Program-made: the position numbers and the translations under genes
Part shown: one piece after another, positions 15,537 to 38,645 of the stretch
Layout of the letters: every line of letters begins with the position of its first letter
Numbering within the stretch: the first letter of the stretch is position 1
Sequence record: NC_025447.1
Strand: one strand, 5' to 3'
Length of the DNA: 64,000 nt
The notes under the pieces: model-generated
What the model was told of the DNA's origin: nothing
The model's database searches: none
Seen by the model: only the letters and a program-made list of their open reading frames with translations

Positions 15537-15800
15537 ATGAATATCCAAGATAGATTACAATTACTGTACACTATTGAACAGGCTGCTTTTGAACTTGTTC
15601 GAAAAATATCAGATGAACTACCTAAAGGAACTAAAGTTCGTGTACGTGAGATGAATTATTTTTCTGGAGTAATTGAAGAACAAGTACTAACAGTGAATAA
15701 AGTAACATACTATGAATCTGAGTTGTCTATTCAGTGTGAATCGGATGATGGATTAATATCATATTATGGAACTGATGTAGATATAGAGGTAATAAAATGA
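15537..15800 (+). CDS. hypothetical protein (small beta-barrel-like family)
   Basis: 87 aa; start moved to 15537. Confidence 0.65.
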   Translation: MNIQDRLQLLYTIEQAAFELVRKISDELPKGTKVRVREMNYFSGVIEEQVLTVNKVTYYESELSIQCESDDGLISYYGTDVDIEVIK

Positions 15801-16939
15801 CCCTTTTACAAATATATGAAGATTTAATGCACTTATGTAATACAAACGATGCGTTTTTTTATGTGGATCATAAAAGTCCTGCTGGTGGTACGTATCGTGT
15901 ATTCAGTTATCGTCTAGCATCATACACTGATTTCATGCAACCAAATGCGTTGGAAACCCGTGGCTCTATGTGGGAAATTGATGAAGAAGGTGACATGATA
16001 CGTTGTGCAGCACGTACAATGAAAAAGTTCTTCAATGCTTACGAGAATCCTGCTACAATGTTCCCTGCTAACACCACATGCGATGACATTGCGGTAGTTA
16101 TGCCTAAGTTGGATGGTTCGATCATCAGTACTTATCGTGATAATGATGGTGAGATTCGTTGTAAATCACATACTGCATTGTATTCTGACCATGCGATTAA
16201 CAGTACTCGACTTATTAACGAGAACCAGAATTTGTATCAGTACATCGACGAAGCGGAACGTTTAGGTTACACAGTTAATATGGAGTATACAAGCCCAGAG
16301 TACCGAATTGTATTACCATATCAGGTAGAACAACTGTTTGTACTGAACGTTCGACATCGTGTGAGTGGTGAGTTGCTATGTGGTAAAGCACTACGTGATA
16401 AGTTTCCATGCCTTGCACAGTACAGTACTAATATGACCGGAAAAGATATTCATCACACTTTTCCGGTACGAAATACCTTCCGTGAAAGCGTGGAGGAAGT
16501 TCATAAAATGCTTGATATTGAGGGTTTTGTGTGCATCCTAAATAATGGGACAATGTGTAAAATAAAGACTGACTGGTACAGTTCATTACATCTTACAAAA
16601 GATAGTATTATTATTGATTCTCATTTATATGAAGCCGTATTAAATGGTTCAAGTGATGATTTAAAACAATTGTTCAGTACTGATGAATATGCTATGCAAA
16701 AGATATTAAGAATGGAACAATTGGTATTTTCGTGCTATAATGCATTACAAGATGAAGTAGAAAGCTTCGTCAAGGAACACAAGCACTTGGAGCGAAAGGA
16801 ATTCGCAATGAAGGTTCAGGAGTGTTTAACTAATGAACTGAATCGTCAGGGCTTGGCCTTTGCAATGTATAACAATAAGAAAGTTGATTACAAAGAGACT
16901 CTTATAAAATACATGAAAATTGTACTAAAGGATTTTTAG
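15797..16939 (+). CDS. rnlA: RNA ligase 1 (T4 Rnl1-like)
   Basis: FSYRLASYTDF, ETRG, KKFFN, motif I PKLDGSII, EYTSPEYRIV, IEGFV, CKIKTDWY. Confidence 0.93.
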   Translation: MTLLQIYEDLMHLCNTNDAFFYVDHKSPAGGTYRVFSYRLASYTDFMQPNALETRGSMWEIDEEGDMIRCAARTMKKFFNAYENPATMFPANTTCDDIAVVMPKLDGSIISTYRDNDGEIRCKSHTALYSDHAINSTRLINENQNLYQYIDEAERLGYTVNMEYTSPEYRIVLPYQVEQLFVLNVRHRVSGELLCGKALRDKFPCLAQYSTNMTGKDIHHTFPVRNTFRESVEEVHKMLDIEGFVCILNNGTMCKIKTDWYSSLHLTKDSIIIDSHLYEAVLNGSSDDLKQLFSTDEYAMQKILRMEQLVFSCYNALQDEVESFVKEHKHLERKEFAMKVQECLTNELNRQGLAFAMYNNKKVDYKETLIKYMKIVLKDF

Positions 16940-18035: not shown

Positions 18036-18968
18036 ATGCCAACTATTACACTGACAGTTGGATTACCTGGGTGTGGCAAAACCACATGGGCAGTTCAAGA
18101 AATTAAAAATGCCAAATCGAAGACTATCAACATTAACCGTGATGACATTCGAGAATCAATGGCAGGGTCACATGATGCATACAAATTCAACGACGCTAAT
18201 GAGCAGTACGTAACTAAAATGCAGTTCAGTGCAGCAAATTCAGCAGCAGAGAATGGTTGGAACATCATTGTGTCCGATACGAACCTTAAACAACATTTCC
18301 GTGATGAATGGAAACGTTGGGCTAAAGATAATGAATACGACTACAAAGAAAAGAACTTCTACGAAGATTTCGTACCTAATGAAGATCGTGGTGCAGATGT
18401 TCATGTTTTCTTTAAGATTAAAGAGTTCGTAAAACTTTGTAAGAAACGTAACCTCATGCGTGAGCGTTCAGTACAAGATAATATCATCGACACTATGGCA
18501 GATACGTACTATTATAGTAAGGCCATGCACATTGGTTACTATGGTAATTCACGAGAAGCTGCTGTTATCGTTGATATTGACGGTACTCTTGCTCATAAAT
18601 GGGGTCGCAATCCTTACGATGAAAGTACTGTTCTTCAGGATACACCAGATGAAGAAGTTATTTTGTCTATTATCGCTGAAGCAGTTTTTCATAAACGCAA
18701 GATTATCGTCATGAGTGGGCGTACTGAAGGGTGTCGTGCTGATACCGAACAGTGGCTTAAGAATTGGGGTATTCCTTACGATGCATTGTTTATGCGAGAC
18801 ATAGATGATAAACGTCCCGATGATGTTGTAAAATTCGACCTGTACATGAAAAATGTGGTTGATCATTACGATGTTAAAAAGGTTTATGATGACCGCGATC
18901 AAGTTGTATTCATGTGGCGTAAGCTACTTGGCTTGAAAGTAATGCAAGTTGCAGAAGGAAATTTCTAA
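18036..18968 (+). CDS. pseT: polynucleotide 5'-kinase / 3'-phosphatase
   Basis: P-loop GLPGCGKTT, NRDDIR, HAD motif DIDGT, MSGR, RPDDVVK, YDDRDQVV. Confidence 0.95.
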   Translation: MPTITLTVGLPGCGKTTWAVQEIKNAKSKTININRDDIRESMAGSHDAYKFNDANEQYVTKMQFSAANSAAENGWNIIVSDTNLKQHFRDEWKRWAKDNEYDYKEKNFYEDFVPNEDRGADVHVFFKIKEFVKLCKKRNLMRERSVQDNIIDTMADTYYYSKAMHIGYYGNSREAAVIVDIDGTLAHKWGRNPYDESTVLQDTPDEEVILSIIAEAVFHKRKIIVMSGRTEGCRADTEQWLKNWGIPYDALFMRDIDDKRPDDVVKFDLYMKNVVDHYDVKKVYDDRDQVVFMWRKLLGLKVMQVAEGNF

Positions 18969-25267: not shown

Positions 25268-26686
25268 ATGAGCATTTTAGCAATTCTTGAAAGCATTAAA
25301 AATACTAGCAGTACTCTGGGCAAAAAGGCTATTCTTGAACAAAATAAAGATAATGTAACTTTGCAAAAAGTTCTGAAATATACACTCGATCCTAGTATTG
25401 TAAGTGGGTATAAAAAGCTACCAGACGCTGATAACGTGTATCAACATATGACATTGGATGAAGCTATTGATAAACTAGAATGCATCTATAAGCGTGCATT
25501 GACGGGACATACAGGGCGTGATTTCATTGCTTCAGTACTAGGTAGTGTGAGTCCAGATGATGCTGAAGTTCTTCGTAAGATGCTTACAAAGAACTTAGAT
25601 TGTGGTATTCAAGAAAAGAACTGCAATGATGTATTTGGTAAAGGATTTATTAAAGATGAACCATATATGCGTTGTTCTTTGCTTGATAAAAAGACTGTTA
25701 AGAACATCAACTTCAAAGGTCATGGTTATGCTGTCTCCGAGGTCAAGATGGATGGTCAGTACTTAAACCATGTAGTCATTAATGGTGCTCTTACCTCTTC
25801 CTCCCGTAATGGTAAACTATATGACTTCTTAGGTTGTCGTGATGGTGAGATGGCAGGTCTTGCACATCAAATTCAAATGAATGATGAACGTTTTAGTAGT
25901 GGTGTCGTCTTTATGGGTGAAGGTCTAGTACTTGATAATGACGGTGAAACTATTCTTCCACGAACAACTGGTAATGGTATCATTCAGAAGGCTGGTAAAG
26001 ATAGTATTAGTCAGAATGAAGCAATGCGTACTGTATTTGTACTATGGGATGTTGTTCCGTATGATGCATTCTGTGAAGGTACATGGAATGTAAAACGTAA
26101 AGAACGTCGCGAACTTCTTGAATCTGCCATCAATGTATTGGGTAGTGATTTTGTACGTATGGTGAAATACCGTAAGGTTCAAAACATTAAAGAAGCATTT
26201 GAGTACAATAACGAACTCATGGATCAGGGTGAAGAAGGATCAGTACTGAAATGTGAAGATGGTATCTGGAAATCACATACATCTCCTAAGCAGTTGAAAG
26301 TAAAACTAAAAATGCAATTGGATTTGCGTATTGTTGGTTTCAACGAAGGTGAAGGTAAGCGTAAAGGTTCACTTGGTTCTTTACAACTTGAAAGTGCATG
26401 TGGCACACTGAAGGTAAATGTAGGAACAGGTATCCGTGAAAAAGATGCAGAGTGGACATTCAAAACCATTTGGGAACGAATGCAAGAACTAATTGGTAAA
26501 GTCGTTACCGTTGAGTGCAATGAGATTGTAATCGACAAGCGTACAGGTGAACCATCACTATTTTTACCAGTGTTTATTGAATTTAGATTTGACAAAAACA
26601 CTTGTGACGATTATACTCGTATCTTAGAAATTCGTGATAGTGCTGTTGAGGTGTTCTCTAACAGTATTATTGAAGCACTTAGCTAA
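25268..26686 (+). CDS. ATP-dependent DNA ligase (T4 gp30-like)
   Basis: motif I EVKMDG, FMGEG, LWDVV, EGSVLK, W...SP.QLKVK, VGTG, LFLPVFIEFRFDK. Confidence 0.95.
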   Translation: MSILAILESIKNTSSTLGKKAILEQNKDNVTLQKVLKYTLDPSIVSGYKKLPDADNVYQHMTLDEAIDKLECIYKRALTGHTGRDFIASVLGSVSPDDAEVLRKMLTKNLDCGIQEKNCNDVFGKGFIKDEPYMRCSLLDKKTVKNINFKGHGYAVSEVKMDGQYLNHVVINGALTSSSRNGKLYDFLGCRDGEMAGLAHQIQMNDERFSSGVVFMGEGLVLDNDGETILPRTTGNGIIQKAGKDSISQNEAMRTVFVLWDVVPYDAFCEGTWNVKRKERRELLESAINVLGSDFVRMVKYRKVQNIKEAFEYNNELMDQGEEGSVLKCEDGIWKSHTSPKQLKVKLKMQLDLRIVGFNEGEGKRKGSLGSLQLESACGTLKVNVGTGIREKDAEWTFKTIWERMQELIGKVVTVECNEIVIDKRTGEPSLFLPVFIEFRFDKNTCDDYTRILEIRDSAVEVFSNSIIEALS

Positions 26687-26705
26687 TCATTTATTGGAGG
26701 TAATT

Positions 26706-27497
26706 ATGAAATTTGTTGTAACATCTGACGTACACGGTGGAACTGATTACCTCCATAGCGGTGATTACAGTGATGTAGTACTGATCATTGCTGGGGACTT
26801 CGATGAAGTTAAACGCAGTCGTTACCGTACTGGTATCGAATCACTGTGTAAGCAGTTCAAAAATGTAGTACTGGTTCCAGGTAATCACGAATATTATGGT
26901 TCCAATATCATCAAAACGCATAAAGTACTATCCAATATGCAGGATGAGATTCCTAATTTTATCTTTTTGCAAAACAAATTTGTATGGCTGGATGGAGTAC
27001 TGCTTGTTGGTAGTACTCTGTGGACAGACTTCGATAAAGGTAATTCTTTGACGAAGTTTGATGCTCGTCAGAAGATGAACGATTACAAACATATCCGTCA
27101 TGGAACAACATCAGAGCCTTGGCGTAAAAAACTGACACCTGATGATACTGAGTTTATGCATCACAAAGATAAACAATTTATCAAAAATTCTATTGACACA
27201 GTTCGCTTTATGCATGATAATGATTTCAAGGTCATCGTGATTACTCATCACGCACCAAGTTATCAAAGTGTTTCACCAAAATATAAAAATGATTCACTGA
27301 ATGGTTGTTACTGTTCCGATATGGATCAGTACATTGAAGATTTGGGTGCTGATGTTTGGATTCATGGTCATGTTCATAGTAGCTTTGACTACCACATTGG
27401 TAAGACACGTATCATTTGTAATCCACGAGGCTATGAATCGTATAGTGGATCTTGTGAGAATTTTGATTACAATCCTAAATTTGTATTTGAAATTTAA
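26706..27497 (+). CDS. calcineurin-like metallophosphoesterase
   Basis: SDVH, AGD, GNHEYY, GSTLWTDF, THHAPS, HGHVH. Confidence 0.9.
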   Translation: MKFVVTSDVHGGTDYLHSGDYSDVVLIIAGDFDEVKRSRYRTGIESLCKQFKNVVLVPGNHEYYGSNIIKTHKVLSNMQDEIPNFIFLQNKFVWLDGVLLVGSTLWTDFDKGNSLTKFDARQKMNDYKHIRHGTTSEPWRKKLTPDDTEFMHHKDKQFIKNSIDTVRFMHDNDFKVIVITHHAPSYQSVSPKYKNDSLNGCYCSDMDQYIEDLGADVWIHGHVHSSFDYHIGKTRIICNPRGYESYSGSCENFDYNPKFVFEI

Positions 27498-30519: not shown

Positions 30520-31015
30520 TACTAATATCTGGTTAGATAACATAATCAAGACATTAGAATTAATTAAACTTACATTACAAAAAACTACTGATATTGAAAT
30601 TAATATTAAACAAGAAATATTAAACTATTATCATAGAAACAAATATAGCACGTTTATCTCTAAATTAATTTATGGATTATATGATATTGAAGATATTTGC
30701 ATCGGTTACAGTACTGGTATTTGCTTCACTGTTAATGGTTTAAAAAATGATTTAAATTTCAGACTTTCCGATGAAGAGCAAGATTTTCGTAGATTTTGTG
30801 ATAATATTATGGATACAGACAAAATTACATTTGTGATTGAATTAAATCAAACATGGTCTACATATGCAGATAAACCATTTGAAATTAATGAAACAGATGT
30901 GTTAAACTATATTCGAGTTATGAAAATTCATGATTTGTGTAAAAACGCATTGTTAAGTATTGGAGCTTATAATGAAACATACGACTTGGTTGAAGATAGC
31001 AGAAGTAGTTGCTGA
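30491..31015 (+). CDS. hypothetical protein
   Basis: 174 aa. Confidence 0.65.
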   Translation: MKYTHLSIDDTNIWLDNIIKTLELIKLTLQKTTDIEINIKQEILNYYHRNKYSTFISKLIYGLYDIEDICIGYSTGICFTVNGLKNDLNFRLSDEEQDFRRFCDNIMDTDKITFVIELNQTWSTYADKPFEINETDVLNYIRVMKIHDLCKNALLSIGAYNETYDLVEDSRSSC

Positions 31016-31451
31016 GGAAAGTAAATGTATTTCACAAAAAGTTGGTTGTGTTATTGTTAAAAATAATAGAGTATTGAGTACTGGATACAATGGAACGCCA
31101 TCTAAGCAGCCAAACTGTTGTGATGTAAATCAACATTTAGTGAACGATGGTCGTTTTCAAGACTGGGTTGATGATGCAGCAAAACATGAACATCATGAGT
31201 GGAGTAATATTCATGAGATCCATGCAGAGATGAACGCTTTACTGTATAGTTCTCCTACTGAACGCCAAGGAGCAACTCTTTACACAACTCTACAACCATG
31301 CTATACTTGTTCTAAGTTAATCGCAGGTAGTGGGATTACCCGTGTAATTTATCACAAAAGTTATCCACGAACACCACCTGAAGCGATTAAAGTACTGGAA
31401 GATGCTGGGATTATTGTTAACTGCATTTATGACAAGGGTATGAATCAATGA
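30972..31451 (+). CDS. cd: dCMP deaminase
   Basis: SKCISQKVGCVIV, STGYNGTP, EIHAEMNAL, LQPCYTCSKLI. Confidence 0.93.
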   Translation: MKHTTWLKIAEVVAEESKCISQKVGCVIVKNNRVLSTGYNGTPSKQPNCCDVNQHLVNDGRFQDWVDDAAKHEHHEWSNIHEIHAEMNALLYSSPTERQGATLYTTLQPCYTCSKLIAGSGITRVIYHKSYPRTPPEAIKVLEDAGIIVNCIYDKGMNQ

Positions 31452-32419: not shown

Positions 32420-33028
32420 ATGAAAAGACTATGGCTTGAGGTAGTACAAGCAGTAATGCTTCTGATGTTGATAAATTTTCCAGCCAGTGCTGGTGTTGAA
32501 AGTAAAAATGTGATAAAGTACAATCCTGAAACACGTAATGTATATTTCATCTCAGATATTACGGATGGGTCACTAAAGCGTATGATGGAGTTGTATGATA
32601 AAGAACACTATGATACCATTACCATCACATCGCCAGGTGGTGATTTTGATGCTGGGATTAAAATGGCAAACTTCGTTAGAGACAATGGTATAAATTTAAT
32701 TGTTTCTAGGTATTGCAACTCAGCATGTACTGTGGTATTCTTCAGTGTAGCTTTTGAAAAGCGATACATGATAAATCGCTCAGTACTGGGACTTCATAAC
32801 ATTTCTATTAAAAGTAATGTTAAAGACGGTGATAATTCTTTTGTATCAGTTAGGCAGCTATCAACTTTTACTGAAGAAATGGCAACTAAAGTAGGTTTTC
32901 TATTTACACTATATTCTGCAAATGGAATTCCACCAGACGTTCTATATAAAGTTAGCCGTTCGCGTGGTGAAGATGTTGTAATATTAACAAAACCAGAACT
33001 GGTTTTTTACGGTTCAGTCAAACAATAA
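32420..33028 (+). CDS. exported ClpP/crotonase-fold protein
   Basis: signal peptide ending PASA; TSPGGD, CNSAC, LGLH. Confidence 0.55.
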   Translation: MKRLWLEVVQAVMLLMLINFPASAGVESKNVIKYNPETRNVYFISDITDGSLKRMMELYDKEHYDTITITSPGGDFDAGIKMANFVRDNGINLIVSRYCNSACTVVFFSVAFEKRYMINRSVLGLHNISIKSNVKDGDNSFVSVRQLSTFTEEMATKVGFLFTLYSANGIPPDVLYKVSRSRGEDVVILTKPELVFYGSVKQ

Positions 33029-33098
33029 AAATAATTAAAATAACAGGATGATTATGATGTACTTCCTTTGTTATTAATTATATTGAGATTATATAACT

Positions 33099-33359
33099 AT
33101 GACAAACATCCAAAATTTGACATCTATTATTTTTTATGCTACAGTAGTGATGTATATTACTGTACTTTTCCTAACAGTTTTCATTTACAAAGATTACAAA
33201 AATGGCTTTATTGATAACACAACAATGAAGTTCAATTCAAAGTTTGAAGCAATAATTTATTATGTTCTGGCAACATCATATTTGGTGTGTCTAATGTTAT
33301 TAGGTACATTGATTTATATTTTATATACAACTTTATTTGCAATTGGAGCTATTTTATGA
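33099..33359 (+). CDS. small membrane protein
   Basis: two hydrophobic helices. Confidence 0.6.
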   Translation: MTNIQNLTSIIFYATVVMYITVLFLTVFIYKDYKNGFIDNTTMKFNSKFEAIIYYVLATSYLVCLMLLGTLIYILYTTLFAIGAIL

Positions 33360-33952
33360 CATGTATCATTGCACACACTGATGGTGTAACTTCTTTTATT
33401 GCAGGGGACAAACTGGGAAGTAACGGGTTCACAAAGTCCGTTCAAACTGAGCCTAAAGTATTTGAGAAAGAATTCATTAAAATCAATGATGATGCTGGTT
33501 TGACCCGTACAAAAGAAATTATGGCGATTGGTTACACCACATCATTCCGTATGGGTCAACTTCTTACTTACAGTTTGAATCTACCACAGCAAGATGCAAA
33601 TGAGACGTTTCCACAGTACTTAGTACTGAAAGTTATTCCTATTATTCGTCAAATGTTCAAAGAGGAATGGGGTTCTCGTGATCCTTCACAAGAAGTAGGT
33701 GGTGGACAGTTCATCATTCTTCACAATCATACAATTTATGAAGTTCAAGAAGATTTTTCAGTTCTTCAACCGAAAACACGAATCACCGCCGTAGGTAGCG
33801 GAACATATCATGCTATTGCAGCAATGCAAGCATATATTGAAGTTGAAAATGAATCAAAAGTGCCACTACATGAACGCATCAAATCAATTTTTAAAATTGT
33901 CAGTGATAATGTAACTAGTGTAAGTGCCGAGTTTGATGTTTTAAAGTATTAA
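33356..33952 (+). CDS. HslV/proteasome-beta-like Ntn hydrolase
   Basis: M-TCII (N-terminal Thr), AGDKLGS, KVF, AVGSG; start moved to 33356. Confidence 0.7.
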   Translation: MTCIIAHTDGVTSFIAGDKLGSNGFTKSVQTEPKVFEKEFIKINDDAGLTRTKEIMAIGYTTSFRMGQLLTYSLNLPQQDANETFPQYLVLKVIPIIRQMFKEEWGSRDPSQEVGGGQFIILHNHTIYEVQEDFSVLQPKTRITAVGSGTYHAIAAMQAYIEVENESKVPLHERIKSIFKIVSDNVTSVSAEFDVLKY

Positions 33953-33970
33953 AATTATAAGAGAGAATAG

Positions 33971-34165
33971 ATGATGGCATACACAATTTATGAATGGGTT
34001 TTGAGTTTTTTTATAGTTTTTTCTATTGTTGTAATTTATAACAATGCTAAATGCTTATACAGGGACTTGAAATCCAATGGTTATCACAAAGATAATAATT
34101 TTATGTATGCCTATCATATTGGAATAATTCTGTTATTATCAATATATTTAATTGGTTTTTCATAA
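33971..34165 (+). CDS. small membrane protein
   Basis: two hydrophobic helices. Confidence 0.55.
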   Translation: MMAYTIYEWVLSFFIVFSIVVIYNNAKCLYRDLKSNGYHKDNNFMYAYHIGIILLLSIYLIGFS

Positions 34166-34174
34166 GGATCGAAT

Positions 34175-34927
34175 ATGATATCAGAAAAATTTATAAGTAA
34201 TGAAGGTAAAAAAAGATTACTGATTATATCTGGTGCAGGACTTTCAGTCGAAAGTGGGATGGAACCTTTTCGATTTGATGATGGTTTGTGGGATACATTT
34301 AAAATTAATGATGTATGTAACATTGCTAGTTTAACTACAAAATATCATGTTGTTCATTCTTTCTATAATACATTGCGTGTAAAATTGGGACAATGCGAAC
34401 CAAATGCAATGCATTATTTTATAAAATCGTTAGAAGAACAATATGGTGATTGCTTCCTTCATATGACTTCTAACATGGACGATCTTTATACTCGTATTGG
34501 TGGTCATGAGCTTAAACTTCATGGAAACTTGTGCGAAGTTATTGAAAATTATAGTATCAATTCTGATGATTATAATGTTATTAACTGCGGATACGAACCA
34601 TACATACCAAAACATGATGTTTTTGCTAAACCAAATGTGGTAATGATTGGAGAATATCATCGTTATGTTGATGGTATACGCTTACCAATTTACGAAGAAC
34701 GAAATAATGTGTTGAAATCTCTTAATGAAAATGATACAGTTATTGTAATTGGTAGTAGCGATACAGTACTAGTATGGTCGAGATTAGCAGCAGCATTACC
34801 ATGTTATAGTGTTAATGTTAACATTCGTAAAAATGATAATGATTTTTTGTTTAATGAAAAAGTTATCAAGCCAGCAACCAAAGCAATACCACATCTAGAG
34901 ACTATAATTAAGGAACGTATGAAATGA
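34175..34927 (+). CDS. Sir2/CobB-family NAD-dependent deacylase
   Basis: SGAGLSVESG..FR, TSNMDDL..R.G, LHGNL, KPNVV, IGSS, VN. Confidence 0.9.
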   Translation: MISEKFISNEGKKRLLIISGAGLSVESGMEPFRFDDGLWDTFKINDVCNIASLTTKYHVVHSFYNTLRVKLGQCEPNAMHYFIKSLEEQYGDCFLHMTSNMDDLYTRIGGHELKLHGNLCEVIENYSINSDDYNVINCGYEPYIPKHDVFAKPNVVMIGEYHRYVDGIRLPIYEERNNVLKSLNENDTVIVIGSSDTVLVWSRLAAALPCYSVNVNIRKNDNDFLFNEKVIKPATKAIPHLETIIKERMK

Positions 34928-35475
34928 GTGTTAAAGAAGTTCCCTTTGGTGAATATGGCTCACGTGCAAATTTTGTATTTTGTTATTTCTTTGCAAGAAA
35001 ATGTAACCCTTACAAAAACTATGAGTTGAATGATATACCAGAAGTAAATTTAGTTTTACTACAATTACGATGGGATGGTCTTCTTGGTGGATGTGGTGGA
35101 ACCGTAGAAAGTACTGATATCTCACTAGAAGATGCGTTGCGTCGTGAAGTTCAAGAAGAAATGGATTACAATATTTTTGTTTCCCATCTTCGACCACTCA
35201 AAACTTTTGAAATTTACCCAGGTGCAAACAGTCATAGTTTTAGCTATGAAGTAAGCTATGACGAGTTGAAACACATTAGAGATGGATACACTAATGCTAA
35301 ACATGCGAGTGCTGAAGTTGCTGGTGTAAATTTATGTCATATTTCTCGTTATTCTAAGGGACAAAATCGAGAAGCGGGATATAATAATCTTATGACACAG
35401 AACTTCATCGGTACAGCAAAACAAGAATTGGAGTATCTGGTTCAAAAAGAAAACTTACTAATTAGTTATCTATAG
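34924..35475 (+). CDS. Nudix hydrolase, NUDT16-like
   Basis: [26 protein letters not shown] Nudix box, FIGTAKQEL. Confidence 0.85.
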   Translation: [183 protein letters not shown]

Positions 35476-35484
35476 GAGTTTAAC

Positions 35485-35805
35485 ATGTCTTACGCAATGT
35501 TTTTGGATGATATTCGTGATGCAAATCTATATTATCCAAACCAAGATATGGTGGTATGTCGTGACTTTAAAAGTGCATGTGAATATGTTATTGAAAATGG
35601 AATTCCAGCATTTGTATCATTCGACCATGACTTGGGTGATGTGAGCGAAGACGAAAAGACTGGATATTCTTTTGCTAAGTTTCTTATTGATTATATGTTT
35701 GATAATAATATTAAAGAACCGTTTGAGTACTTTGTTCACAGTAGTAATCCTGTTGGTAAAATTAATATTGAAACATACTTAAACAATGGATTTAACGCAT
35801 TATGA
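35485..35805 (+). CDS. cyclic-phosphate-processing receiver domain protein
   Basis: FLDDIR, VSFDHDLG, TGY.FAKFL, HSSNPVG. Confidence 0.8.
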   Translation: MSYAMFLDDIRDANLYYPNQDMVVCRDFKSACEYVIENGIPAFVSFDHDLGDVSEDEKTGYSFAKFLIDYMFDNNIKEPFEYFVHSSNPVGKINIETYLNNGFNAL

Positions 35806-36104
35806 TTCAAACACACATCAAAAGTCTTATTTGTACTGTTCTGTTAGGTGCAGGAGTTCTTTGGTTCGGACAGTATCACGAGAACACTAAGCGTACCAAC
35901 ATTCACTACAATACCGCAGAAGTTGTTAGTTTAGGACAATGTAGCGAGTCCAAATGTTCATTCATGTATAAAACCCAAAGTGGTGAAGTACGTAATGGAC
36001 TATCAAGAGAACCAGTTTCAATTGGTCAACTTGTTTACCAGGAGTGCTGGGAAGAAAAGGTTCGAGGTTCACGTTGCTATGTTGAATACGAACCAAATAT
36101 GTAA
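35802..36104 (+). CDS. membrane-anchored hypothetical protein
   Basis: N-terminal hydrophobic helix, four Cys. Confidence 0.65.
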   Translation: MIQTHIKSLICTVLLGAGVLWFGQYHENTKRTNIHYNTAEVVSLGQCSESKCSFMYKTQSGEVRNGLSREPVSIGQLVYQECWEEKVRGSRCYVEYEPNM

Positions 36105-36164
36105 TAATCCGAGTCAATAACATTAGTCGAGTACAAGGATGTACTCATAACTCAAGGATGTTTT

Positions 36165-37604
36165 ATGAAAAAATATACAATTGACACAAACGTACTACTA
36201 TCTGACCCTAATGCATCTATTGCTTTTGATGGTGCTGCAATCATTCTACCATTTACAGTACTGGAAGAATTAGATTCGATTAAGAGTCGTAATGTAGATG
36301 TTTCACGCGATGCTCGTGTTGCTATTCGTAACATTGAAGCAATTATTGCAGATGCATCACATGACGAGATTAGTAGTACTGGTGTTAATATTGCTGATGT
36401 TCATACCAATATGAATCCTGATAGCAAATTGTTTGTTATTACAAACGAAGAAGCTGAGGCACTAATTCGTACTAAAGGTACAGAAGAGAAAGTTCAAACC
36501 CTTCTCAAAAGTACTGTACCTGATGATAAAATCATTCTGGTAGCTTTAGCAACAGAATCAGTACTGGTAACTCGTGATATCAACATGCGTATCAAAGCAC
36601 TAAGTTATGGTGTCGAGGTACAAGATTATCGCCATGATATTGTTATTGGTGATAGTGATTTGATTCACATTGGTCAACACCATCTGGAAATCAATTTTTG
36701 GGAAGTATACAGCAACTTAACCAATACTAATATTCAATCCGAACAAGTTGGTCGTCGTTTGTATCATTACATTTCTAAAAGCTTGATTGAACATCTGCTT
36801 CCACAAAATCTATGCATCGGTGATTATCTATATGATGATGCTGACGTATTATTTGTGTACGAAGGACAATCAGCAATTGAGGAAGATGATGGAACACTAA
36901 CACCAGAAGATATTTTGGTATTCCAAGACATTGGACAATCAGTGTCTTTACGTGCTAAAGTATGGGATATTAAAGCAAAGAATATCCAACAAGCACTCGC
37001 CATCAACAGTATTCTCGATCCTGATGTACATCTAACAGTACTGCTAGGTTCTGCTGGTACTGGTAAAACACTAATTACAATTGCTACTGCATTAGAATTA
37101 GTACTGGAAAAACGTAAATACGACCGAATCATCTTCTCTAAAACTCAAGACTCACAGTTTGAAGATATTGGTTTCTTGCCAGGTTCAGAAGCAGAAAAAG
37201 TGATTCCATTCTGTGGAGCCGCGATTGATGCGTTAGAGTTTCTTCATAAAGATGATGCCAATCCACAAGGTAGTATTGAAGAGATTATGAAACGTAATGT
37301 TATTCAATTTAAAGCACTAAACTTTGTACGTGGACGTTCATTCACCAACACTATTCTAGTAGTTGATGAATTCCAAAACATTACACCTGCACAAGCAAAA
37401 ACCATCTTGACACGAGCAGGGTTAAACTGTAAAGTAGTAATTATGGGTAACTTGAGTCAGATTGACAGTAAGTTTATTAGTCCTGTTAACAGTGGTTTGA
37501 CATATGTAACTGAGAAGTTTAAAGACTGGGCAGGTTGTCGTGTCATCGAACTAGAAGGTGTTGTTCGTTCACCACTGGCTGAATTTGCTGAAGAAAATAT
37601 GTAA
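36165..37604 (+). CDS. phoH: PhoH-like ATPase with N-terminal PIN domain
   Basis: IDTNVLL, VLEELD, PDDKII, TRDINMRIKA; GSAGTGKT, RGRSF, VDEFQN, GNLSQID, RSPLA. Confidence 0.93.
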   Translation: MKKYTIDTNVLLSDPNASIAFDGAAIILPFTVLEELDSIKSRNVDVSRDARVAIRNIEAIIADASHDEISSTGVNIADVHTNMNPDSKLFVITNEEAEALIRTKGTEEKVQTLLKSTVPDDKIILVALATESVLVTRDINMRIKALSYGVEVQDYRHDIVIGDSDLIHIGQHHLEINFWEVYSNLTNTNIQSEQVGRRLYHYISKSLIEHLLPQNLCIGDYLYDDADVLFVYEGQSAIEEDDGTLTPEDILVFQDIGQSVSLRAKVWDIKAKNIQQALAINSILDPDVHLTVLLGSAGTGKTLITIATALELVLEKRKYDRIIFSKTQDSQFEDIGFLPGSEAEKVIPFCGAAIDALEFLHKDDANPQGSIEEIMKRNVIQFKALNFVRGRSFTNTILVVDEFQNITPAQAKTILTRAGLNCKVVIMGNLSQIDSKFISPVNSGLTYVTEKFKDWAGCRVIELEGVVRSPLAEFAEENM

Positions 37605-37612
37605 TATTGTAT

Positions 37613-37641
37613 GGGACATAATGTCCCATACATGATATAAT
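37613..37641 (+). promoter_or_regulatory. promoter, GGACA type
   Basis: GGGACA-N17-TATAAT with TG extension; -35 lies inside hairpin TATGGGACA-ta-TGTCCCATA-like. Confidence 0.65.
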
Positions 37642-37672
37642 GTTGTTATCATAATACAGAAGGAGATATAAA

Positions 37673-37861
37673 ATGGCTAAACAACCTAAGAAACAAGAAC
37701 CAGTAGCAAAAGTTAAGAAAGAGAAAGTTATTCAATCCAAAGAACAACGTATGTACGAACAACGTAAGAGTGAAACCCTATCCGGTCTACAAGCTCTACG
37801 CAAGCAAGGTGTACTAACTCGTGCACAGTACCGTGAACTAGTAGCTCAGAAAGGTTTTTGA
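37673..37861 (+). CDS. small basic protein
   Basis: 62 aa, AAGGAG RBS. Confidence 0.75.
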   Translation: MAKQPKKQEPVAKVKKEKVIQSKEQRMYEQRKSETLSGLQALRKQGVLTRAQYRELVAQKGF

Positions 37862-37965
37862 TTCATTTGAAGCAATATTGTGGAGTTCTTAATAAATACT
37901 TTTATAAGAATAATAATACTTTTTATTAAATTAAAAAGAACTCCATGTGTTATTTCAGTTTTTCG

Positions 37966-37991
37966 TCCCTGTCTTTTGGCAGGGATTTTTT
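37966..37991 (+). terminator. intrinsic terminator
   Basis: TCCCTGTC-tttt-GGCAGGGA plus T run. Confidence 0.8.
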
Positions 37992-38087
37992 ATATCTATA
38001 TCTTGACAAAAGGAACAAATCATGAGAACATGTATTAAAGGAAGAATGACTTTCCATTAGGTTATTTTAACTTAAAGGAGATTTCAT

Positions 38088-38645
38088 ATGTTTTTTGACC
38101 AAACATTTACGTTGTATCACGATTCTGGTAAAGTTGAGATTGTAGACGATCTACTTCAATACATTGCTGACCATCAAGGGATAGATCGTTTCCACAGTAA
38201 GATGAAATTTGATTTAGCAGAATTCAACAAAAAGAATCGTGAAACTTTTTGGAAGAACCGTTTCTATTACGAAATGTTCCCAGAAGAGTTTGTGGGTTAT
38301 TATCTTTGTACTGAAAAAGGATTACTTGTATCTCCTGATTTACTTATGGGTGAATACATGATACTCTATAATGAGTACTGGGAACATAAACGTAAAGCTC
38401 GTGATACGGAATGGCGACATAAGCGTTCGTATATGTACAAACATAACCACTCCCGATACAAGCGTCCTAAGACTCAACAAGAGCGTCGTATGGCTTGTGC
38501 AGTACTGAAGGATGAGGGGGAACCTGATATACGTGGAAGACGTAAGATGCGTTCATTACCATCGTATTGGGACGATATCAGAACAAGACATAGTACTGGC
38601 TGGAAATACAGTACTAAACGTAAACATCAATACAAAGGGAGCTAA
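38088..38645 (+). CDS. hypothetical protein with basic C-terminal motif
   Basis: RRKMRSLPSYWDD...WKYSTKRKHQYK; AAGGAG RBS. Confidence 0.75.
   Translation: MFFDQTFTLYHDSGKVEIVDDLLQYIADHQGIDRFHSKMKFDLAEFNKKNRETFWKNRFYYEMFPEEFVGYYLCTEKGLLVSPDLLMGEYMILYNEYWEHKRKARDTEWRHKRSYMYKHNHSRYKRPKTQQERRMACAVLKDEGEPDIRGRRKMRSLPSYWDDIRTRHSTGWKYSTKRKHQYKGS

Follow-up and report, generated by a model that had tools for sequence, protein, structure and literature searches.

A Sir2, NUDT16-Like Nudix and cREC Gene Cassette in Escherichia Phage 121Q and Its Possible Role in NAD+-Dependent RNA-End Repair

Introduction

What do three back-to-back genes for a sirtuin, a Nudix hydrolase and a cyclic-phosphate receiver (cREC) protein do for the Escherichia phage 121Q (Asteriusvirus, 348.5 kb)? 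In this study, we analyzed a stretch of 64,000 nucleotides (nt) of the 121Q genome (sequence record NC_025447.1), here called the window, whose position 1 is genome position 186001. The cassette consists of genes 476, 477, and 478 at window 34175-35805. The genes were already annotated in the published phage genome, and GenBank and RefSeq label them as Sir2-like protein, nudix hydrolase, and hypothetical protein, respectively.

NAD+ and ADP-ribose (ADPr) derivatives are central to the conflict between phages and bacteria, as in the Thoeris, DSR, SIR2-HerA, and NARP pathways. Phage sirtuins are common, and their activities have so far only been predicted. As a small and conserved unit that is amenable to experiment in an E. 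coli phage, the 121Q cassette could show whether a sirtuin acts on RNA phosphates in the manner of Tpt1, what the chemistry of cREC is, and which substrates the microbial NUDT16 enzymes hydrolyze.

Iyer, Burroughs, Anantharaman, and Aravind have reported a sirtuin-centred NAD+-utilising RNA-repair neighbourhood of jumbo phages, type 1, with Serratia phage BF as the exemplar (Iyer et al. 2022, Viruses 14:1977, section 3.7.3, PMC9503650). In their proposal, RNA 2'-phosphates are the target of a KptA-like activity of the sirtuin, while its partner enzymes either open cyclic phosphates or act on the ADPr cyclic phosphate set free (PMC9503650). The cassette had therefore been described in 2022 by comparative genomics, as a prediction. 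Since the cassette itself is not new, its value lies in testing that prediction.

Results

The Three Genes Are Coupled and Encode Sir2, Nudix and cREC Proteins

The SIR2 gene 476 (34175-34927, 250 amino acids (aa)), the Nudix gene 477 (34924-35475, 183 aa), and the cREC gene 478 (35485-35805, 106 aa) all lie on the plus strand in the list of open reading frames (ORFs). The stop codon of the Sir2 gene and the start codon of the Nudix gene share the tetranucleotide ATGA. The gap between the Nudix and cREC genes is 9 nt, and a GGAG precedes the cREC ATG. An initial annotation, made from the letters of the window, had claimed three coupled genes here, and the ORFs were found exactly as it gave them, co-directional and either overlapping or 9 nt apart. 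Such junctions show translational coupling of the three genes. The RefSeq start of gene 478 is at window 35497, 12 nt downstream of the ATG at 35485. We prefer the start at 35485, which has the GGAG Shine-Dalgarno sequence; the added residues include Tyr3, which was invariant in the 8 close homologues aligned.

Pfam calls were judged against the curated cut-offs. All three domain identities named in the initial annotation, Sir2, NUDT16-like Nudix, and cyclic-phosphate receiver, scored above them as SIR2, Nudt16-like, and cREC_REC. PHROGs likewise has families for these proteins and for that of the downstream PIN-PhoH gene.

The Nudix Protein gp477 Is of the NUDT16 Type

The Nudt16-like model (PF22327) matched gp477 at 1.3e-18 (67.9 bits, cut-off 27), and the generic NUDIX model gave the lower score of 29.7 bits (7e-7). 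A phmmer search against PDB chains aligned residues 37-179 with X29 at 2.8e-12 and with human NUDT16 at about 3e-11, a sequence likeness that is far beyond chance. The alignment to human NUDT16 given in the initial annotation was reproduced block for block in this search. A profile of 105 family sequences was then compared with the PDB and matched X29 (2e-27) and NUDT16 (4e-26, with a range to 6e-26) over the full length. The same-family paralogue TIRR/syndesmos, which is catalytically dead, followed at 5e-18. For the best generic Nudix protein the value was 1.7e-11, and its alignment spanned only some 50 residues at the Nudix box. The NUDT16 family thus outscored all other solved Nudix proteins by about 15 orders of magnitude. 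None of the NCBIfam bacterial Nudix equivalogs matched gp477; only NudI gave a hit, at 0.0023 and 17.6 bits against a cut-off of 95. This lead and the lack of a bacterial equivalog bear out the proposal of the initial annotation that the protein is of the NUDT16 type rather than a generic MutT/NudF enzyme.

The AlphaFold model of gp477 had a predicted local distance difference test score (pLDDT) of 96.8, and its fold resembled NUDT16 and X29 over the full length, N-terminal strands included. All of the top 39 Foldseek matches in the PDB were NUDT16, X29, or TIRR/syndesmos, with template modelling (TM) scores of 0.72-0.82. The root-mean-square deviations of these top matches were mostly 2.4-3.5 Å, with TIRR chains up to 4.3. 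The next family had a TM score of 0.56.

Residues G55, G58, E75, E78, E79, and E131 were invariant in the 105 family members, and R49 and D51 were nearly so. In NUDT16, Arg50 binds phosphate and Asp52 positions Arg50. The gp477 residues R49, D51, E75, E78, E79, and E131 correspond to human R50, D52, E76, E79, E80, and E136, for which roles at the metal (E76, E79, and E80 of the Nudix helix, and E136 outside the motif) and the phosphate (R50, D52) have been documented (PMC4485890, PMC6459841). With all metal and phosphate ligands in place, gp477 is predicted to be an active Nudix enzyme.

The base contacts of the animal enzyme were not found in gp477, where human His24 is replaced by Phe19 and Gln170 by Glu168. 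In the human protein, His24 stacks on the purine, and Gln170 hydrogen-bonds hypoxanthine N1 or adenine N6 (PMC4485890, PMC6459841). Across the microbial and phage branch, Phe occupied the His24 position in 112 of 113 sequences and Glu the Gln170 position in 99 of 113. We considered whether Glu168 versus Gln170 could discriminate between ADPr and inosine diphosphate (IDP) as the substrate, and rejected this marker: a family member fused to Ham1/ITPase also carries Phe and Glu, so the pair marks the branch and not the substrate. Taken together, gp477 is like human NUDT16 and Xenopus X29 (the U8 snoRNA-decapping enzymes that hydrolyze IDP, ADPr, and caps) in full-length sequence and fold, but differs from them in its base contacts, at about 25% identity, and on a separate branch of the tree.

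gp477 Belongs to a Microbial Branch of the NUDT16 Family

A word-indexed search had given 13 close relatives of the Nudix protein. An exhaustive profile search of 1.84 billion representatives gave 482 clusters (50% identity), and 163 of these reached E <= 1e-10. Most of these Nudt16-like clusters were metagenomic and unnamed, and bacterial and phage members were included. Named members were the 'U8 snoRNA-decapping enzyme-like' proteins of a tick and a horsehair worm (E ~1e-11 to the phage profile), a Goniomonas protein, and a protein from a metagenome-assembled genome of Obscuribacterales. A scan of bacterial genomes with the Nudix alignment matched 27 patterns and brought up no true relative; the bacterial members were reached through metagenomic contigs only.

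In a quick maximum-likelihood tree with weak support, the animal proteins and a protist formed one clade inside a group with the Ham1-fused member. In the same tree, the Rak2-like phage clade grouped with a member from an NAD operon. These results suggest that the phage Nudix protein belongs to a microbial branch of the NUDT16-like family, outside the animal orthologue group, and nothing in the sequences suggests a recent transfer from animals. The initial annotation had described the enzyme subfamily as best known from animals. This holds for the literature but not for the distribution, and the phylogeny that it had suggested as a check places gp477 within the NUDT16 family, yet off the animal branch. 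NUDT16 is mentioned 0 times in the 2022 description, which placed most phage Nudix proteins in the NudE or NadM clades (PMC9503650). The placement of gp477 in the microbial NUDT16 branch is therefore new relative to that description.

Fusions of the Nudt16-like domain with an NMNAT-like domain, with HD_4, and with Ham1/ITPase occurred elsewhere in the family. The bacterial Ham1/ITPase fusion (P0062, L010:6001-7176) lies beside genes for adenylosuccinate synthase and SAICAR synthase, and in this purine context it is probably an enzyme that sanitizes inosine triphosphate (ITP) and IDP to inosine monophosphate. On an 888-kb metagenomic contig (L009:3798-8837), another Nudt16-like gene (P0024) stands between NAPRTase and NMNAT genes on one side and NAD synthase on the other, and appears to be embedded in an NAD biosynthesis cluster.

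gp476 Belongs to a Zinc-Less Phage Sirtuin Clade

The sirtuin gp476 matched Pfam SIR2 (PF02146) at 4.6e-20 (72.8 bits, cut-off 24) and phrog_2162 at 1e-77. Its best PDB relatives were CobB and Sirt5, with which it shares the Rossmann core, the catalytic His, and the NAD+ motifs. Unlike these proteins, gp476 has no zinc-binding cysteines, carries a VCNI motif of its own, and falls below the CobB NCBIfam equivalog cut-offs (92.7 bits vs 318 and 85.7 vs 320). The Gln of the sirtuin TQNID motif is also replaced in its clade. Invariant in this clade were the GxG motif, PNxxH, N100, D102, and the catalytic H116-G117. Sirtuins typically bear a four-cysteine zinc ribbon in the small domain, but in Rak2-like, T5-like, and rV5-like members alike the stretch from the catalytic His to the GSS motif held no conserved Cys, and the phage sirtuins of these three groups have the VCNI motif, TxNVDDL, and the lack of zinc cysteines in common. 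These features suggest that gp476 represents a zinc-less, phage-specific Sir2 clade that is predicted to consume NAD+.

None of the PADLOC models for defence Sir2 proteins (ThsA, DSR, SIR2-HerA, and others) matched gp476 at E <= 0.01, and a defence-system role of gp476, for which PADLOC gives no support, was rejected. GenBank annotators name proteins of the gp476 type cobB or deacylase. In one of two near-identical IMG/VR contigs (L020:5863-6623 and L028:5295-6055), Sir2 is split into two ORFs, and in the other it is intact, which points to a frameshift or a sequencing error. The Vequintavirus gene that follows SIR2 (L106:5773-6483, 237 aa) is labelled 'putative Sir2-like protein' and had zero Pfam matches.

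gp478 Is a Predicted Receiver-Fold Phosphoesterase

The third protein, gp478, matched Pfam cREC_REC (PF20274) at 1.8e-22 (80.3 bits, cut-off 27). The cREC domain was named by Iyer et al. 2021 (PMC7824862) and was stated to be experimentally uncharacterised in 2022 (PMC9503650). Residues D8, D9, R11, D47, H48, D49, H85, S86, and N88 were invariant in 39 cREC sequences. In the gp478 model (pLDDT 95.8), strands 1, 3, and 4 bear the invariant residues at their C-terminal ends, as they do in receiver domains, with D8/D9 after strand 4-7, D47 after strand 43-46, and S86 after strand 81-84. The model matched almost only receiver domains (Foldseek E ~1e-3; VIA-align Z 8.2-9.9 over ~88 residues), and has four strand-helix units against the five of a receiver. 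We therefore regard gp478 as a predicted aspartate-based (cyclic) phosphoesterase with a receiver fold and an intact acidic pocket.

At least 141 phage records carry the domain, as do at least 491 viral contigs. In nearly all of 71 other viral loci it stood alone, with a length of about 100-145 aa, and it was Nudix-fused in the sister phages. This fits the cREC family, whose members stand alone or are joined to enzymes of nucleotide or RNA processing and not to two-component output domains. A census of standalone cREC neighbourhoods covered 35 dereplicated viral loci with 230 neighbouring ORFs of at least 120 aa. The recurrent neighbours were Macro, calcineurin-like phosphoesterases, Rnl2/Rnl1/RtcB ligases, AAA_33 kinases, PhoH, NAPRTase, NMNAT, Nudix, and a YAcAr-SLOG protein. 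The neighbours of cREC thus mix RNA end-healing enzymes with NAD/ADPr enzymes. In 121Q itself, the sole Macro candidate was a weak ORF outside the window (G000:C1:259599-259940; E 0.005, 15 bits), below threshold.

The Cassette Is Conserved in Rak2-Like Phages

RaK2 (Alcyoneusvirus), Serratia phage BF (Eneladusvirus), and GAP32 (Mimasvirus) share the gene order Sir2, Nudix, cREC, membrane protein, PIN-PhoH, as does every Rak2-like IMG/VR contig recovered. Several Rak2-like phages have one small extra ORF between Sir2 and Nudix. In BF, GAP32, P0014, and several others, Nudix and cREC form a single polypeptide of about 300 aa. The membrane-protein gene was syntenic in Rak2-like phages and absent in the more distant L012 and L101. 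A PIN-PhoH2 gene followed Nudix/cREC in every relative, including a distant phage without an adjacent Sir2 gene. The initial annotation had seen a three-gene operon. Its tight coupling held, but the unit exceeds three genes and continues into the membrane ORF and the PIN-PhoH2 gene.

Phage 121Q belongs to the same Rak2-like group as the type-1 exemplar, and the BF locus aligns with it gene for gene. By its Sir2 cassette, 121Q is a member of the type-1 neighbourhood; it differs from BF in that Nudix and cREC are separate genes and in that the linked 2H phosphoesterase gene is absent from the 121Q genome. Our analysis also departs from the 2022 description in the NUDT16 assignment of the Nudix protein and in the BF/GAP32 '2H' protein, which scored here as Acb1 family. 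This 148-aa gene lies beside Sir2 (L003:2507-2953, L004:2500-2946), is annotated 'RNA ligase', and matched the Pfam Acb1 (anti-CBASS) 2H family; an Acb1-family gene occupies the matching position in a metagenomic phage (L012:6366-6815). Iyer et al. 2022 took the BF-type gene as a 2H RNA-repair enzyme (PMC9503650). In the distant phage L101, proteins of 248 aa and 155 aa upstream of Nudix were considered as divergent sirtuins and rejected by Pfam and hhalign (probability 0.1%).

Context Links the Cassette to RNA-End Repair

We next examined the neighbours of the Sir2 and cREC genes in other phages. In the Vequintavirus phage pangalan, an Rnl1-type RNA ligase, cREC, and SIR2 form one tight co-directional run, in which cREC was supported by Pfam (1.8e-13) and hhalign (probability 97%). 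On the opposite strand, a Pnk-like AAA_33 kinase and a calcineurin-like phosphoesterase (Metallophos) are encoded just upstream. The T5-like phage Spc35 has a SIR2 gene that overlaps the gene of a HAD_SAK_2 'Swiss-army-knife RNA repair' phosphatase. The Sir2 clade is thus tied to RNA end-healing genes in three phage lineages, Vequintavirus, T5-like, and Rak2-like, and the main argument of Iyer et al. was reproduced independently here. Because the Sir2 clade and cREC repeatedly adjoin RNA end-healing genes, we rank first, and hold tentatively, the proposal of Iyer et al. 2022 that the cassette carries out NAD+-dependent RNA-end repair with clean-up of the ADPr cyclic phosphate. The initial annotation, which had offered erasure of ADP-ribosylation, removal of RNA caps, or clearance of ADPr-type defence signals, was therefore partly supported: identities, coupling, and NUDT16 type stood, but its list of functions omitted NAD+-dependent RNA-end repair, which has the best support from context and had already been published.

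We infer the substrates of gp476, gp477, and gp478, whereas the families, residues, coupling, synteny, fusion, and linkage are as observed above. In the RNA-end repair scheme, host ribonucleases would leave RNA ends with a 2',3'-cyclic phosphate, which cREC would open in the role of a 2H cyclic phosphodiesterase. Sir2 would then move ADP-ribose from NAD+ onto the remaining 2'-phosphate, in the manner of KptA/Tpt1, and release nicotinamide and ADP-ribose 1'',2''-cyclic phosphate. The Nudix enzyme may cut the pyrophosphate of this by-product, or that of ADPr- or adenylate-capped RNA ends. Its products would be AMP and a phosphoribosyl (cyclic) phosphate, and cREC would linearize the latter. The Rnl1 ligase and Pnkp of 121Q, encoded upstream, would seal the RNA.

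In yeast and plant tRNA ligation, Trl1 (ligase, kinase, and 2H cyclic phosphodiesterase) and Tpt1/KptA act in turn, and Cpd1 and Poa1 then process ADPr cyclic phosphate. The proposed phage activities equal those of this pathway, namely ligase, kinase, cyclic-phosphate opening, NAD+-dependent phosphate removal, and by-product clean-up, and the analogous genes are all adjacent in Vequintavirus. In contrast, no phage protein is homologous to Tpt1 or 2H, and Sir2 and cREC are proposed as analogues only.

The Nudix-cREC fusions suggest consecutive steps on a molecule with both a pyrophosphate and a phosphate ester, and ADPr cyclic phosphate is such a molecule. According to the NARP1 study (bioRxiv 10.1101/2024.02.11.579819), the Nudix enzyme NudC acts on ADPR-cyclic phosphate and yields phosphoribosyl cyclic phosphate. 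A Nudix enzyme fused to a cyclic-phosphate-opening domain would be expected to start with a reaction of the NudC type.

The 121Q genome contained a T4-type Rnl1 and Pnkp but no KptA (PF01885, PTS_2-RNA), and this was counted in favour of RNA-end repair. A Tpt1-like role of Sir2 would be by analogy only. The genome likewise contained no 2H (PF13563), no homologue of the BF 2H/Acb1 protein, and no Rnl2. Also counted in favour were the conserved catalytic residues of all three proteins and, for gp476, the missing zinc ribbon, the scores under the CobB cut-offs, and the lack of a match to defence-type Sir2 models. The RNA ligase gene 438 (15797-16939, plus strand, 17 kb upstream; Pfam RNA_lig_T4_1 and T4_Rnl1_C) and gene 443 for Pnkp, a polynucleotide kinase and HAD 3'-phosphatase (18036-18968, plus strand; annotation, AAA_33, and HAD_PNKP at 1.9e-43), are possible functional partners of the cassette. 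With its T4_Rnl1_C domain, the ligase forms with the kinase-phosphatase a complete T4-type tRNA-repair pair, in an early-gene-like region.

Several points weigh against RNA-end repair. The ligase and kinase genes lie 16-18 kb upstream of the cassette. Repair by a T4-type Pnkp and Rnl1, as encoded in 121Q, leaves no 2'-phosphate behind, and it is not evident why a Tpt1-like step would be required. We know of no sirtuin that has been shown to ADP-ribosylate an RNA phosphate, and to our knowledge PIN nucleases produce no cyclic phosphates. In the literature after Iyer et al., we found no experimental work on cREC, this phage sirtuin clade, or a phage NUDT16-like Nudix. The distribution of the genes points the same way. 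The NUDT16-like Nudix occurs in 75 phage records, almost all from jumbo phages with genomes near 350 kb, and the Sir2 clade in 981, so the partnership is specific to one lineage. In a distant phage (L101/L102), the Nudt16-like, cREC, and PIN-PhoH genes are contiguous without an adjacent sirtuin, which is an addition to the published description. Since the spreads differ and this phage lacks an adjacent Sir2, the evolutionary core is Nudix and cREC followed by PhoH2, with Sir2 joining in the Rak2-like lineage. Finally, NARP2-type NAD+ salvage genes and a gene of the Acb1 family adjoin the block in the sister phages; this is a further addition to the published description and points to counter-defence.

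Alternative Roles of the Cassette

Counter-defence within the NAD+-ADPr economy is somewhat unlikely in our judgement. The Nudix and cREC activities would here break down immune signals that derive from ADP-ribose, or else toxic by-products (cyclic ADPR isomers, ADPr cyclic phosphate, ADPr-1''-phosphate), the products would be recycled to AMP and ribose phosphates for NAD+ resynthesis, and Sir2 would generate or regulate such molecules. NARP2 (NAMPT + NMNAT) is an experimentally shown counter-defence pathway against NAD+-depleting defences, and such a pair, NMNAT(-Nudix) and NAMPT, lies directly upstream of the block in RaK2, BF, GAP32, and the metagenomic jumbo phage L012 (NARP3, a PnuC + NadR system reported in Sci Adv 2026, was considered as a relative and found to be unrelated). 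In three of these phages, with RaK2 as the exception, the block additionally follows an Acb1-family 2H gene (56-59 bits, cut-off 27). NARP2 and Acb1 share with the cassette the theme of NAD+ and nucleotide signals, but neither is homologous to gp476, gp477, or gp478, and 121Q keeps the block without NAMPT/NAPRTase and without any 2H/Acb1 gene in the genome searched. Adjacency in a region dense in early genes is weak evidence as well, and a phage-encoded NAD+ consumer is ill-suited to NAD+ conservation. Cellular members of the family lend further support, one lying inside the NAPRTase-NMNAT-NAD synthase cluster and another carrying an NMNAT-like domain; in the quick tree, whose support is weak, the phage clade falls together with the NAD-context member, and the neighbours of cREC include Macro, NAPRTase, NMNAT, Nudix, and the YAcAr-SLOG protein. 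The signal-degrading activity itself is a prediction. A narrower proposal, which we consider unlikely, is that Nudix-cREC is a dedicated two-step enzyme that would convert ADP-ribose 1'',2''-cyclic phosphate, or a related phospho-ADPr, to AMP and ribose-1,5-bisphosphate. If so, the host could convert the ribose-1,5-bisphosphate to phosphoribosyl pyrophosphate, and Nudix-cREC, Sir2, and the NAMPT/NMNAT of the sister phages would close an NAD+ cycle. This would also give cREC its first biochemical function, make the microbial NUDT16 branch specific for ADPr-type substrates, and perhaps reveal a new enzymatic counter-defence against ADPr-derived immune signals.

The remaining three roles appear less probable still. 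Decapping of host or phage RNA by the NUDT16-like enzyme, which would remove NAD, ADPr, Ap-type, or adenylate caps, with cREC trimming 3' cyclic phosphates and the ends being passed to PIN-PhoH2, is decidedly unlikely. NUDT16 and X29, to which gp477 is closest among solved proteins, decap RNA, and in every relative, even the one without an adjacent Sir2, Nudix/cREC is followed by PIN-PhoH2; but the base-contact residues of the animal enzymes are replaced (H24 to F, Q170 to E), RNA binding is an assumption, and neither the Sir2 linkage nor the NAD operons around other family members would be explained. It has been reported that T4 NudE.1 decaps NAD-RNA in vitro and that its inactivation delays lysis (bioRxiv 10.1101/2024.04.04.588121). 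Like gp477, NudE.1 is a phage-encoded Nudix, acting on adenosine-diphosphate-X compounds (ADPr, Ap3A, FAD), but it belongs to another Nudix clade than the NUDT16-like proteins of the 75 phage records. We regard it as very unlikely that these are unrelated housekeeping genes and neighbours by chance, with Sir2 an ordinary CobB-like deacylase and the Nudix clearing O-acyl-ADPr or ADPr. CobB and Sirt5 are the best solved relatives, GenBank labels agree, and sirtuin deacylation gives O-acyl-ADPr, a possible Nudix substrate. However, gp476 reached 93 bits against a 318-bit CobB equivalog cut-off, the zinc ribbon is missing clade-wide, and synteny across at least 4 genera, the Nudix-cREC fusion, and the overlapping stop and start codons do not suit chance neighbours. 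Least likely is sanitation of the nucleotide pool, in which the Nudix enzyme would hydrolyze (d)IDP/(d)ITP arising from host adenosine-deaminase defences. Human NUDT16 is an IDP/dIDP hydrolase (PMC4485890), and one bacterial family member is fused to Ham1/ITPase among purine genes; in the quick tree, however, the phage clade stands apart from the Ham1-fused branch, and this role fits neither the cREC fusion nor the Sir2 linkage nor the NAD contexts. At position 168, gp477 has Glu in place of the Gln that recognizes hypoxanthine N1; since the Ham1-fused member shares this Glu, the difference is not decisive. The three readings ranked first are not mutually exclusive.

Extent of the Transcription Unit and Neighbouring Genes

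Downstream of cREC, gene 479 (35802-36104, plus strand) encodes a small membrane protein of 100 aa, identified by phrog_14661 (3.9e-44) and synteny; its start shares an ATGA with the cREC stop. After a gap of 60 nt follows gene 480 (36165-37604, plus strand), which encodes a PIN and PhoH ATPase of the PhoH2 type (RNA helicase/nuclease), as identified by Pfam (PIN_4 7.8e-20, PhoH 7.3e-44) and synteny. Its nearest NCBIfam model was 'RNA 5'-3' helicase PhoH2', with a score under the cut-off of that model.

Upstream, a small hydrophobic ORF of 64 aa (33971-34165, plus strand), unannotated in RefSeq and without a match to any Pfam family, ends 9 nt before the Sir2 ATG and may belong to one transcription unit with it. 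A consensus scan found a terminator-like hairpin with a T-run at 37965-37986, the sole such site on the plus strand in 33000-38200. It is a possible, weakly supported end of the transcription unit, such sites being no more numerous than in shuffled sequence. The promoter scan gave 32 sites, compared to 26.2 +/- 4.7 in shuffled sequence, a difference that is not informative. In wastewater metatranscriptomes, 121Q-like phages appeared only as patchy, low-depth contigs, which signal presence and not transcription.

ClpP-like and HslV-like protease genes cluster just upstream of the Sir2 block (32420-33028 and 33287-33952), and gene 464 (record 214364-215059) was also counted in this group. An HslV-like gene precedes the block in some relatives too (L015, L017). 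Two dCMP-deaminase-like genes lie within 11 kb (window 30960-31451 and record 227250-227618), and a dCMP deaminase gene was found upstream of the Nudix-cREC block in the distant relatives L012, L014, and L101 as well. At window 25268-27497, an ATP-dependent DNA ligase gene is directly followed by one for a calcineurin-like phosphoesterase, an arrangement that recalls end-healing and end-sealing modules.

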